DNA of 63,976 nucleotides, filler included, from Olpidium bornovanus S191 (lineage: Eukaryota; Fungi; Olpidiomycota), in NCBI GenBank assembly GCA_017911155.1. It is 30 parts of 30 records of this genome, joined end to end, with 100 filler letters (N's around TTAATTAATTAA, not from the genome) between each part and the next. Parts side by side here need not be neighbours in the genome. Positions count along the whole stretch, not along the records: positions 49,410 to 53,347 come from JAEFCI010008817.1; 29 more parts are not named here. One strand, written 5' to 3'. Every line of letters begins with the position of its first letter. Within the stretch, counting starts at the first letter, position 1. The notes beneath the pieces were generated by a model. That model worked only from the letters and a program-made list of their open reading frames with translations. It searched no databases and was not told where the DNA came from. This document shows positions 49,067 to 53,347 of this stretch, one piece after another. The position numbers and the translations under genes are program-made.

Positions 49067-49488
49067 ATGGTTTGCCTCATGCGTGAGGAAACGTCCCTCT
49101 GAGGAGGAGCAAGCTGGTGAACACCCGACACCAACTACAAGTTGGACGTGACGCCTGCGGGCAGCTCTGGCCATGGGTTTTCCCCAGACATGCTCTGGTT
49201 TTACCATTGCCTTATGTGAGCTAAACTTCTCCGATGACGTTTGTTGTCTTCGTTGCTCAGGGCACGTCCCTTCGAGCGAGGAGGAGTGTTGTGAACTGGA
49301 AGAGTGCGCNNNNNNNNNNNNNNNNNNNNNNNNNNNNNNNNNNNNNNNNNNNNTTAATTAATTAANNNNNNNNNNNNNNNNNNNNNNNNNNNNNNNNNNN
49401 NNNNNNNNNCATGCTTTTCAGTAGTTCGGGCATTAGTAGTAGTGCCTTTTCCAACTCAGCAGGTAGGGCTGACCTGTATGCGCACTAA

Positions 49489-52400
49489 TGTTGATACTCA
49501 AGCCCTCTTCCCGCTACCCTCCGAAAGTAGTTACCACAACCTGAACCGAGAATAAACCAAACACAACATAACCAAACCACAGGTTATGAGCCCAACTGCG
49601 CCTTGCCCGTGAACCCACGAACGCTCCCGACGAGCGCAACCTCCGCTGCAGAAGAGCGTGAACACCATCCTACCATCCTCCCGTGAATGCTCCCGATGAG
49701 CCTTCCTCTGCGCTCCCGAAGAGCCTTCCTTCTTGCGCTCCCGAAGAGCGCAACCACCTCCTCCTTCCTCCTTGCGCTCCCGAAGAGCGCAGCAACCATC
49801 CCTGCGCCGCTGCGCAGCGACCACCGCCGCGCGCCCACCGTCGCTGCACGCCCGCCGCCGCTGCGCGCCCGCCGCCAACGCCGCTGCGCGCTTGCCGCCG
49901 CGCCCTCGCCGCCGCGCCCTCGCCGCCGCGCGCTCGCCGCCGCGCGCTCGCCGCCGCGCACTCGCCGCCGCGCGCTCGCCGCCGCGCTGTCGCCGTAGCG
50001 CAACCGCCAACCGCCATTTGCGCAACCGCCATCCTCTGCGCCGCCGCGCACCTGCGCCGCCCCGCAGCGACCGCCTCGCACCATCCCAACGCCCACCGCG
50101 CGCCCGCCGCGCCCGCCGCGCCCGCCGCGCCTGCCGCGCCGCGCCCGCAACCGCCATCCTCTGCACCGCCGCGCAGCAACCATCCTTGCGCCGCTGCGCC
50201 GCAGCTCTCTGCACTCCTTCGGAAAAATGCGCCATCCAAGCAAAGAAGCACCCAAAAAGAATGACCAGAACGCCGCCACTGCAGAACGCGGAAAGCTCCG
50301 GACAAGCAACTGCTGAAACTGCTGGGCAGCACATCCCCAGGGCCGGGGAAGACTCAAAGGTAAGAAGCCAGCGCGGAACATTCTCCGAAACGTTGGATGC
50401 AAGGGAACGCGCCCTCCGCGCGCAACAACAGGACGTGGAACGCCAGGAAACGGAACTCCGCATGCAAAAGGAACAGCTAGAACGGGAACGCGCCGAACGC
50501 AGTGCCGAACGCAACGCAAACAGGCGTGAGCTCGTTGACCTCCATGCAAAGTTCGACCAAGTACTTTCGTTTCTCCAGCGGCAGCAACAGCAACAGCAAC
50601 CGCAACCTCTGGCCCCCCCGCCGCCGTCGCCGTCAAGGCATTAGTATCGCAATTTCAAAGAAGAACTCGACGATGAGGTGCGTTCTGTAACCACCAGACC
50701 CGGGGGGGCCTCACTCCGCAATGCTACTCCTTTATGCGCCGCTCCTCCTGTTCGAGCCCCATCCGTTATTTCAGACGCAAGCAGGTTGCCCAAAAAACAG
50801 AAACTCGCGTATTCCATGGTGAAATTACTGCTTGTCGACGTACCGGGGTTCGATGGAACCGGTGGTGCGATGAGACTCGAGACCTTTATCTCAAAGTTAA
50901 ACGGGTATGCCGAGTTTGCCAACGGAATCGTCCCCGATAAAATACAGCTTATGCAAGCAGCAGGAAAACTCGACAAATCCGTGTCTTTGTATTTCCAAAC
51001 TAATCAATGCCGAAGTTCTCCATGGCAAGCATGGCCAGAACTGCGTTCCGCTCTTCATGCACGCTTCTTTCCCGGTGACCACATTAAAAACGTCTGGGAA
51101 TGATTAATGCTATTCGACTTCCAACGCTTCTCTTCCATTCAGGGATATAACGACAGTTTCAACAACCTACTAAATCAACTCGACGAAGGAGAAATGGAAT
51201 CCGAAACGTGGAAGGTCACCTATCAACGCGGACTTCCATGCAAGTACAAAGCTCACCTTCTTGTCAAAGACCCGCAAAGTCTTTGAGACATGCAAAATGC
51301 AACACAACCATTTTCTTCCATTCAGAAGTGGCCATGGTCGACACAGGTCAATTTTTCAACTGCGAAAAATTCCGGCAAACGTGATACTAAACAGAGGAAG
51401 AATACCCCGCAAAATTCCCCCAAAAATAATTCCTCTTCGAAAATTCCAAACCAGGACTTCAATCCACGCACGCATTTCCGAACAAAAGCTGGGCAACTAA
51501 TTACCTGGTCCAAAGTAATTTGCAGGCATTTCAAACGAAAGGGTCACCTCGGAACACGTTGTCCCGGCACAACCGAAGCACAAAAGAGGGGTAATCCACC
51601 TCGCCCACGGGCGAATAACATTAACGCAAACACCGAACCAGAATGCGCGCCCAACCCGCCGGCTGATGCCGTTCTGTTGAACACTGTCGTGAATCGGGTA
51701 GATCGAGTGCGCATAAACGGCCGCACGCAGATCCTTCTCGACTGCATTGCTACTGATCACAGTTCTCCAGACATTTCGCGTTTCAGCTCCCTAGACACCT
51801 CACAAACGACCAAGCTCTACACGGCCAATGCCGACGATGAGGGTTCCTCGACCGCTGGAATCAGCACCATCCACGTACACGGTTCCGAGCGTCCCCTCAA
51901 GGTACGTAATGTCCTATACGCGCCTAACCTTCGACATACCCTTTTGTCGCTAGGCAAAACCACTCGGCAGGGAATCTGTAGCACCTTTGAGCCAAACGGC
52001 ACTATGTTTTTTTACAAGACCGGTGCCATCATCGCCGGCGGCCACCGCACACCGCAAGATCTCTTCGTCCTAGACGAGGTTCCCTCTTCGGACACGGACG
52101 CCGTTGCGAACGCTGATGCAGACGGCGCCGGAGAGGAGGCACAGCTGGACCGGGTCGCCCTGGTCGTCAGCCAGCCCGACGTCGATATCTCGCACTGGCG
52201 TTTCTGTCACCTAGGACTTAAAAATCTTCAGCGCGTCCAGACTATGGTGCAAGGTATGCCAAAAATTCACTTTCCTCCCGACAATACTAATCACTGCGAA
52301 GATTGTATACTCGCAAAACACACCAGACACCCCCATCCTGCCAGCACCACCATTTTTTCCAAAGCCGAACTCGTCCATTCGGATGTCGTCGGACCGCTCA

Positions 52401-53347
52401 GGCTCGGTCACGACGACTCCAAGTACATCGTAACATACATCGAGCATTCCGCACACTACGCAAAATCGTTCACAATTCCCTCCCACGACGCCTGGATTTT
52501 ACTTACCGCATTCAAACTTTTTCAAGCCCTTATTGAGCGCGTCACAGGGCAGAAAATTAAAATCCATCGTACGGACCGGGGGGGGGGGGGAATATATGTC
52601 CGGAGAATATACTGACTATCTGAACGCGTGCGGTATCCGTTCACAGCTGACTATACGCGATACTCCCGAGCAAAATGGCGTCGCAGAACGATTTAACCGA
52701 ACCATTGAAGAACGCACCCGCGCGACCTTGTTTTCCTCCAGGTTACCCATCCGCCTGTGGCCCGAAATTTGGAAATCCGTAGTCCGCGTTTATAATCTGT
52801 CCCCCCACCGTGCCACTAACGCCGTTCCGCTCAGTGTCATTGATGCGCCTCGGATTCCAGACGTCTCCCGTCTGCGAATCATTAGTTTCTATGCATTTTC
52901 TCATGTTCTTCCCACACAGCGCGACCACAAATTCTCTCCTACCGCAGAAAAACTCGTTTTCGTCGGGTATAACAAAACCAGCAAGGGCTACTGGCTATGG
53001 AATTCAGTAACCGATGCAATCGTCGAGCGCTTCGACGTTACCATCGACGAGTCACGCCCTTTCGATCCAGCACTTCACGCTCGGCACCAGCACCGCGCTC
53101 GATGACCCCGACATTCCGCTTGACGCACACGACGCCTATTCCGACGCTCAATAATGAGTACGTCGTCGAGCGCGTCGTCGGCCACCGCTACGACTCCGTC
53201 GAAGACACTTGGTATTTCCATATCAAATGGAAAGGGTACCCGCCGTCCGCAAATTCTTGGGAACCTTCCGATAACTTAAATTGCACTGACCGTATCCGTC
53301 AATATTTCCATCGAAAGCGCCTCCTAATCCCGCCGCACTTCGCCATG
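49489..53347 (+). mobile_element. Ty1/copia element, 5' two-thirds: 93-bp LTR, PBS, gag, protease, integrase, chromodomain (family A; degenerate, cut by contig end)
   Basis: LTR 49489-49581, PBS GGTTATGAGCCCA 49582-49594, and one gag-pol frame from ATG 50261 with three stops. Protease LLDCIATDH..VLYAPNLRHTLLSLG; pre-integrase HWRFCHLG..CEDC; core ELVHSDVVGP..KIHRTDRGG-EY..PEQNGVAERFNRT; SH3-like KLVFVGY..KGY..DVTIDE. Frameshifts at the G-run near 52580 and near 53100. Confidence 0.93.
53156..53315 (+). other. Chromodomain with complete aromatic cage, directly after the copia integrase
   Basis: EYVVERVVGHRYDSVEDTWYFHIKWKGYPPSANSWEPSDNLNCTDRIRQYF, with cage residues Y (EYVVE), W and Y (KWKGY) and the SWEP..NL motif. 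Confidence 0.93.

Follow-up and report, generated by a model that had tools for sequence, protein, structure and literature searches.

A fungal Ty1/copia retrotransposon lineage with a predicted HP1-type chromodomain between integrase and reverse transcriptase

Chromodomains fused to integrases are the textbook case of retrotransposons reading chromatin marks to find safe insertion sites, and they define the chromoviruses of the Ty3/gypsy group. In a 63,976-nucleotide stretch of DNA from the fungus Olpidium bornovanus S191 (assembly GCA_017911155.1; 30 parts of 30 records joined end to end, hereafter the window), a first-pass annotation made from the sequence alone had reported such a domain about 100 bp downstream of the integrase core and SH3-like tail of a Ty1/copia element. 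The question raised by this locus is whether the chromodomain is a genuine part of the copia element or a neighbor that came to lie beside it and, if it is a part, what it might do there and where it might have come from.

The element lies in the piece spanning positions 49410 to 53347 of the window (record JAEFCI010008817.1), where we recognized the following features.

49601..50230, + strand: GC-rich block (75% G+C) of short tandem repeats, with units of 9, 14, 17, 23 and 25 nt
50231..51286, + strand: gag-like region read in frame 2, with a capsid-like part after a coiled-coil stretch (from ORFs; Ty3_capsid match weak, E 0.006)
51521..51562, + strand: remnant of a CCHC zinc knuckle, C-x2-F-x4-H-x4-C, with F replacing the second cysteine (from the translation of ORF 51290-52612)
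51734..51973, + strand: Pol_BBD, the protease-region beta-barrel domain of copia Pol (Pfam E 5.1e-09)
52163..52321, + strand: gag_pre-integrs, the N-terminal zinc-binding region of integrase, copia type (Pfam E 4.9e-07)
52322..52853, + strand: integrase catalytic core, HSD ... TDRGGEY ... PEQNG (from motifs; rve_3 E 0.0014)
52854..53063, + strand: SH3_retrovirus, the SH3-like C-terminal domain of copia integrase, in frame 0 (Pfam E 1.4e-17)
53064..53152, + strand: linker of ~30 codons with the family motif D-x-P-L-D-x-x-D-A (from alignment with L001, a second O. bornovanus copy, and soil contigs)
53153..53314, + strand: frame-2 chromodomain; its cage residues are the Y of NEY, the W of KWK and the Y of KGY (from Pfam, alignment with PDB 1KNA and a fold model)
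53315..53347, + strand: basic tail after the chromodomain, HRKRLLIPPHFAM, up to the end of the piece at 53347

The piece contains one long frame-2 reading, from ~49733 to a run of G at 52578-52590, which is interrupted in its gag part by three in-frame stops, at 50642 (TAG), 51101 (TGA) and 51284 (TGA). The 630-bp repeat block at 49601-50230 lies directly 5' of the gag-like region and within this same reading; if it belongs to the element, it may be a 5' UTR or a low-complexity N-terminus of gag. Further downstream, ORF 51290-52612 holds Pol_BBD and gag_pre-integrs, and ORF 52533-53102 holds SH3_retrovirus at residues 108-177. The two copia-specific flanks of the integrase, gag_pre-integrs and SH3_retrovirus, both exceed their Pfam cut-offs, as does the chromodomain (Chromo, PF00385; E 2.3e-14; score 53.5 bits, cut-off 25.1), which is matched over residues 55-106 (nucleotides 53159-53314) in the frame of 52997-53347. 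The first-pass description of a copia integrase core and SH3-like tail followed about 100 bp later by a chromodomain with three cage aromatics was therefore correct, the distance between the two Pfam matches being 95 bp. It had also held that no insertion boundary separates the two domains and, in agreement with this, a search of these 95 bp for GPY/F, HPVFH, an LTR-like repeat or an inverted repeat found none of them.

The order of the domains is that of copia elements (PR-IN-RT). The window supplies the protease region, pre-integrase, core and SH3 tail, and the copia-type reverse transcriptase RVT_2 follows the integrase tail in two relatives described below (L001 and L018). The chromovirus order, RT-RH-IN with GPY/F ahead of a terminal chromodomain, is not what we found, since RVT_2 comes after the chromodomain in L018. 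The piece stops at 53347, only 33 bp past the chromodomain, so that the reverse transcriptase is visible in the relatives only. Within 49410-53347 we found no LTR or long direct repeat, no primer-binding site for initiator tRNA and no target-site duplication, and both ends of the element probably lie outside the piece. Judged by its sequence, this Ty1/copia LTR retrotransposon copy has mutated and is non-autonomous.

As for the chromodomain itself, the nearest solved structure by sequence is the Drosophila HP1 chromodomain with H3K9me2/3 (PDB 1KNA; E 2e-11, 42% identity), and in this alignment the Y, W and Y of the window copy fall on the HP1 cage residues Y24, W45 and Y48. An AlphaFold2 model (pLDDT 93.2) places strands at residues 5-14, 19-26 and 35-38 and a C-terminal helix at residues 45-54, which predicts an HP1-type fold with a three-stranded sheet packed on the helix. 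When this model was searched with Foldseek, the best fold match was HP1 with H3K9me2 (1KNA; TM 0.88, rmsd 1.2 Å), and the top ranks were held by methyl-lysine peptide complexes of HP1, CBX5, CBX1 and CDYL2 (TM 0.83-0.90 by target, rmsd 1.2-1.4 Å). HP1 and CBX1, 3 and 5 (PDB 1KNA, 3FDT and 6D07), which have identical cage residues and are the best sequence and fold matches, are however cellular proteins with a chromoshadow domain, whereas the domain described here sits inside a retrotransposon polyprotein.

In the window copy, the reading moves from frame 0 (integrase core and tail) to frame 1 in the linker and to frame 2 in the chromodomain. The first-pass annotation had noted that the chromodomain is in another frame and that the copy carries further frameshifts, and the latter include one at a run of 13 G (52578-52590). 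Comparison with L001 and with contigs from soil metagenomes indicates that all three frame changes are private to this copy. L001 (O. bornovanus JAEFCI010002080.1) is the closest database copy, with 90% identity to window positions 52724-53347, and the copies on the soil contigs, which come from four runs of two studies, differ from the window copy by ~1 base in 10 (runs X1-X8, two studies, were compared over 51290-53347). The first extra base in the linker, at ~53081-53085 (frame 0 to 1), is absent in L001 and in all four soil runs, and the second, at ~53152-53154 (frame 1 to 2), is absent in L001 and in runs X1, X2 and X5. The frame also changes at the 13-G run, which lies inside the TDRGGEY motif and has four extra G relative to X1, X2 and X3, the three soil contigs that cover it. 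Since the extra bases absent from the soil contigs sit exactly at the three frame changes of the window, protease to chromodomain is one frame in those copies. The 13-G run could be a real slippage mutation or an assembly homopolymer error; more generally, the three extra-base sites of the window are either mutations or homopolymer-type assembly errors.

The junction between the SH3 tail and the chromodomain is spanned by three of the soil contigs, X1 (over 52157-53347), X5 (52916-53329) and X2 (52968-53347). In L001, a single frame (ORF 5-511) runs from the SH3 tail through the linker and on into the chromodomain, of which it covers the first half; this copy has its own, separate one-base loss within the chromodomain. 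Past the position at which the window piece ends, the L001 reading goes on to a copia-type RVT_2 (gene model P0080, predicted from L001; E 4e-11). Once RVT_2 has started, L001 (over 1150-2223) turns into a G+C-rich stretch, beyond which an ORF similar to copia RNase H runs on the opposite strand (1457-2137); L001 is either rearranged or nested with another element. The differences in the soil copies are mostly transitions (in X1, C>T 56, T>C 43, A>G 38 and G>A 25). The exact stretch of the window was absent from every sequencing run searched (shares 0.05-0.07), and the diverged soil copies suggest that Olpidium-like fungi bearing this element are common in soils.

The copies fall into three families, A (the window copy and L001), B (L019) and C (L002 and L018). 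L001 was reached via P0080 and L019 via P0153, a second O. bornovanus gene model, while L002 and L018 were reached via P0115 and P0157, from two JGI metagenomes. In family B, ORF 357-1877 of L019 (O. bornovanus JAEFCI010006255.1) encodes SH3_retrovirus (E 1.4e-21) and Chromo (E 1.8e-14) in an uninterrupted frame. In family C, one ORF covering L018:2-922 encodes SH3_retrovirus, Chromo (E 1.9e-11) and RVT_2 (E 1.9e-23), the chromodomain sitting ~75 residues upstream of RVT_2, and SH3_retrovirus and Chromo also share one frame in L002. The latter fragment (L002:1-1940; JGI 3300025900, Ga0207710_10025756) begins abruptly within the C-terminal region of the integrase and adjoins ORFs on the other strand with TauE, EVE and weak ZapA Pfam matches; it is either a cut-off copy with unrelated neighboring genes or part of a chimeric metagenome contig. 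None of the copies recovered, in any family, is both intact and full-length.

All three families have in common the linker motif D-x-P-L-D-x-x-D-A, the three cage aromatics and a chromodomain tail of the form C-x-x-x-[LI]-x-x-Y-F-[HR]-[RK]-K, which is followed by L-P in B and C. Between families, the SH3 tails are 52-58% identical and the chromodomains 47-55%, and these similar values indicate that both domains diverged together. From these sequence comparisons, we conclude that the chromodomain has been inherited with the copia element and was acquired once before families A, B and C split. This agrees with the first-pass annotation, which had placed the domain at the integrase C-terminus of the element and had proposed to look in other copies for integrase, chromodomain and reverse transcriptase in one frame, as they are in L018, with SH3 and Chromo in frame in L019. 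It had also listed family members lacking the domain, an unspanned 53050-53160 interval and a separate gypsy fragment as findings that would speak against it. What we found is that the other members carry the domain, that independent contigs span 53050-53160, and that the junction is shared across families, with RVT_2 in frame in L018.

The public gene models give a different picture of these loci. Introns have been drawn across the chromodomain, so that the P0153 model of L019 splices it out and the P0080 model of L001 cuts it short, even though a complete chromodomain is encoded in L019 DNA. As a result, the precomputed domain list for P0153 shows no chromodomain. Since the public O. bornovanus models drop or shorten the domain, surveys of annotated proteins miss such elements.

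Selection can be gauged within two of the families. Between L018 and L002 of family C, dN/dS is 0.074 in the chromodomain and 0.093 in the SH3 tail plus linker; the former value points to purifying selection on the chromodomain during the diversification of family C. Between the window copy and L001 of family A, dN/dS is 0.51 in the chromodomain and 0.42 in the integrase C-terminus, which is as expected for two decayed copies under partly neutral decay.

Together, we consider it highly likely that the gag-pol of this family is one reading frame made up of gag, PR, IN, a ~30-residue linker, an HP1-type chromodomain and a copia RT, with the chromodomain tethering the integrase to heterochromatin. 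The chromodomain would be kept on the integrase's C-terminal end once the protease has cut the polyprotein, its aromatic cage would grip histone H3 at a methylated lysine (H3K9me2/3 being the likeliest mark), and the integration complex would thereby be tethered to heterochromatin, as Ty3/gypsy chromoviruses do. We infer chromatin-directed integration from the predicted fold and the cage residues and, by analogy with chromoviruses, the chromodomain probably tethers the integrase to methylated histone H3.

A chromodomain that belongs to the element could also serve something other than integration targeting. Being so close to RVT_2, it could remain N-terminal on the reverse transcriptase once the polyprotein is cleaved, and among the fold matches the same cage reads varied marks (H3K9me3, H3K27me3 and DNMT3A K47me2). 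Possible variants are that the domain ends up on the reverse transcriptase, that it binds a non-histone methyl-lysine or RNA, or that it acts in nuclear retention or in evasion of silencing. We regard such other roles as unlikely, because the closest matches in both sequence and fold are H3K9me readers of the HP1 and CBX1-3-5 type. The location of the domain argues in the same direction. In the Ty1 and Ty5 integrases, targeting peptides are located right after the SH3-like domain, and the short conserved linker described here lies at that site, past the SH3 tail. Ty5 targets heterochromatin, and the partners of the Ty5 and Ty1 peptides are Sir4 or AC40, a subunit of Pol III. These Saccharomyces elements therefore resemble the one described here in having a copia integrase tail with a determinant past the SH3-like domain, but their determinants are short peptides rather than a folded histone-reader domain. 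Targeting by a chromodomain has its precedent in the chromoviruses, whose integrase C-terminal chromodomains direct integration to heterochromatin according to Gao et al. 2008, as cited in PMC5348765 and PMC11541908.

Another reading would make the chromodomain a separately inserted fragment of a Ty3/gypsy chromovirus that happens to abut the copia integrase. Such an insertion would fit the out-of-frame chromodomain of the window, its N-terminal NEY-V-E motif, which is like that of fungal chromoviruses, and the gypsy chromodomain found nearest to it in the tree described below. It is nevertheless very improbable, because the two extra bases at the junction of the window are absent from other copies, the junction and the linker motif are common to families that are only 52-58% identical, and a copia-type RVT_2 lies downstream in the same frame in L018. 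Moreover, the chromodomain is not preceded by GPY/F or HPVFH, in contrast to most of the gypsy loci compared. These are 15 ordinary Ty3/gypsy chromovirus loci (L003-L017) from a metagenome scan with the pattern NEY[VE]V[ED][RQ][VI][VL]; among those with a reading that reaches upstream of the chromodomain, most have an HPVFH-type motif ~25-40 residues before it, and one of the 15, L010, has an open pol frame of 1276 aa. No further chromo-copia turned up in the metagenome scan with chromodomain patterns, all 15 of the 15 loci being gypsy. Least probable of all, with virtually no chance of being right, is that the junction is an assembly chimera or the one-off capture of a host exon by a dead copy: the source contig is short, the frameshifts lie at a homopolymer run and the exact stretch is in no sequencing run, but the junction is spanned independently by one NCBI contig and contigs of three soil-metagenome runs that lack the extra bases, which excludes a chimera or one-off junction, and the chromodomain is present in three diverged families and under purifying selection in family C. 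The other copies, the sister families and the in-frame RVT_2 thus led us to reject all of these readings, whether a gypsy fragment nested in the element, a chimeric assembly or a passenger exon captured once.

Accepting that the chromodomain was inherited with the copia element, we looked at its possible source, which the first-pass annotation had suggested might be a resident chromovirus. Compared with the chromodomain of the window, the other copia chromodomains reach 62-71 bits, the best of 419 others reaches 60 bits and six gypsy chromodomains reach at most 48 bits, and the pairwise scores of cellular HP1-like domains are at least as high as those of the gypsy chromodomains. In a maximum-likelihood tree, which is indicative only since it rests on just 55 alignment columns, the four copia chromodomains cluster together (support 88/80) and the nearest outgroup is a single gypsy chromodomain, L012 (support 84/88, not starred). 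The spacing before the conserved cysteine is HP1-like in the copia domains, and there is an extra residue in four of the six gypsy domains aligned. On these sequences, a chromovirus as donor of the copia chromodomain is neither supported nor excluded. The tree also contains P0070, a protein of 545 aa from the Leptophrys vorax transcriptome (EukProt) that has two chromodomains but lacks any retroelement domain. Its C-terminal chromodomain is nested among the copia chromodomains; this nesting is probably noise of the 55-column alignment but may lead to a cellular relative.

Database searches for additional elements of this kind returned little. In a representative library searched with the chromodomain, cellular multi-chromodomain proteins, favored by summed scores, dominate the best 150 matches listed, among which only P0080 and P0115 are relevant. 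Word-based protein searches, in a length window that left out full-length polyproteins, recovered very few relatives, and a tblastn search of plasmids gave only two copia matches, which are contaminant-like. In a feature search of the ESM Atlas, no large cluster joins Chromo with RVT_2 or SH3_retrovirus. The same search returned a diatom cluster at scores of 0.83-0.85, which we take as a lead only.

How the Olpidium element relates to known chromodomain elements determines how new it is. The first-pass annotation had considered a chromodomain to be non-standard in copia elements. This stands for fungi, for which we found no report, but not for diatoms, in which such elements have already been catalogued as CoDi-A, also named CoDi-I, so that the novelty is narrower than first assumed. 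Llorens et al. 2009 described copia integrases of diatom CoDi-A elements with a putative C-terminal chromodomain and, in their account, no other copia element had one (PMC2774666). According to Ustyantsev et al. 2017 and a 2024 Ectocarpus paper, LTR elements with chromodomains occur in four groups only, namely chromoviruses, Chronos, ECR-1-like elements and diatom CoDi-like copia (PMC5348765, PMC11541908), and a survey of fungal LTR elements mentions chromodomains for gypsy elements only (PMC3248453). A literature search on Olpidium together with copia retrotransposons found no report. The design of a copia element with a chromodomain is thus known from diatoms, and its occurrence in a fungus appears to be unreported.

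Compared by description, the CoDi-A (CoDi-I) elements of Phaeodactylum tricornutum are, like the element described here, Ty1/copia with a chromodomain between integrase and reverse transcriptase. The host of CoDi-A is however a diatom rather than a fungus (Olpidium and its soil relatives), and CoDi-A is tabulated without a CCHC array (supplement of Llorens et al., PMC2774666), whereas there is one degenerate remnant here, at 51521-51562 of a single decayed copy. Chromoviruses (in fungi, for example MAGGY, Tf1-related and Tcn1-like elements) share with the Olpidium element an integrase C-terminal chromodomain with three cage aromatics (group I type) and, on the proposal made here, the presumed tethering to H3K9-methylated chromatin. 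In contrast to the PR-IN-chromodomain-RT order of the Olpidium element, with its RVT_2, SH3_retrovirus tail and absence of GPY/F, they have the order RT-RH-IN with an RVT_1-type reverse transcriptase, and GPY/F and HPVFH precede a chromodomain that forms the end of the polyprotein. Chronos of oomycetes and ECR-1 of Ectocarpus also have an integrase-fused chromodomain outside the chromovirus clade (PMC5348765, PMC11541908) but, unlike the copia element here, they are Ty3/gypsy elements (Metaviridae) of stramenopiles.

Whether this fungal Ty1/copia lineage gained its HP1-like chromodomain independently of CoDi-A and of the chromoviruses is, in our judgment, evenly balanced. If it did, this would be one more invention of histone-mark-guided integration in LTR retrotransposons, and the first chromo-copia reported in a fungus. 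Integrase chromodomains on the copia side had previously been reported for one diatom clade only, and a fungal copia lineage under purifying selection is a further case of the integrase-chromodomain design. With copia and gypsy integrases carrying the same reader domain, one host phylum offers a natural comparison between the two.
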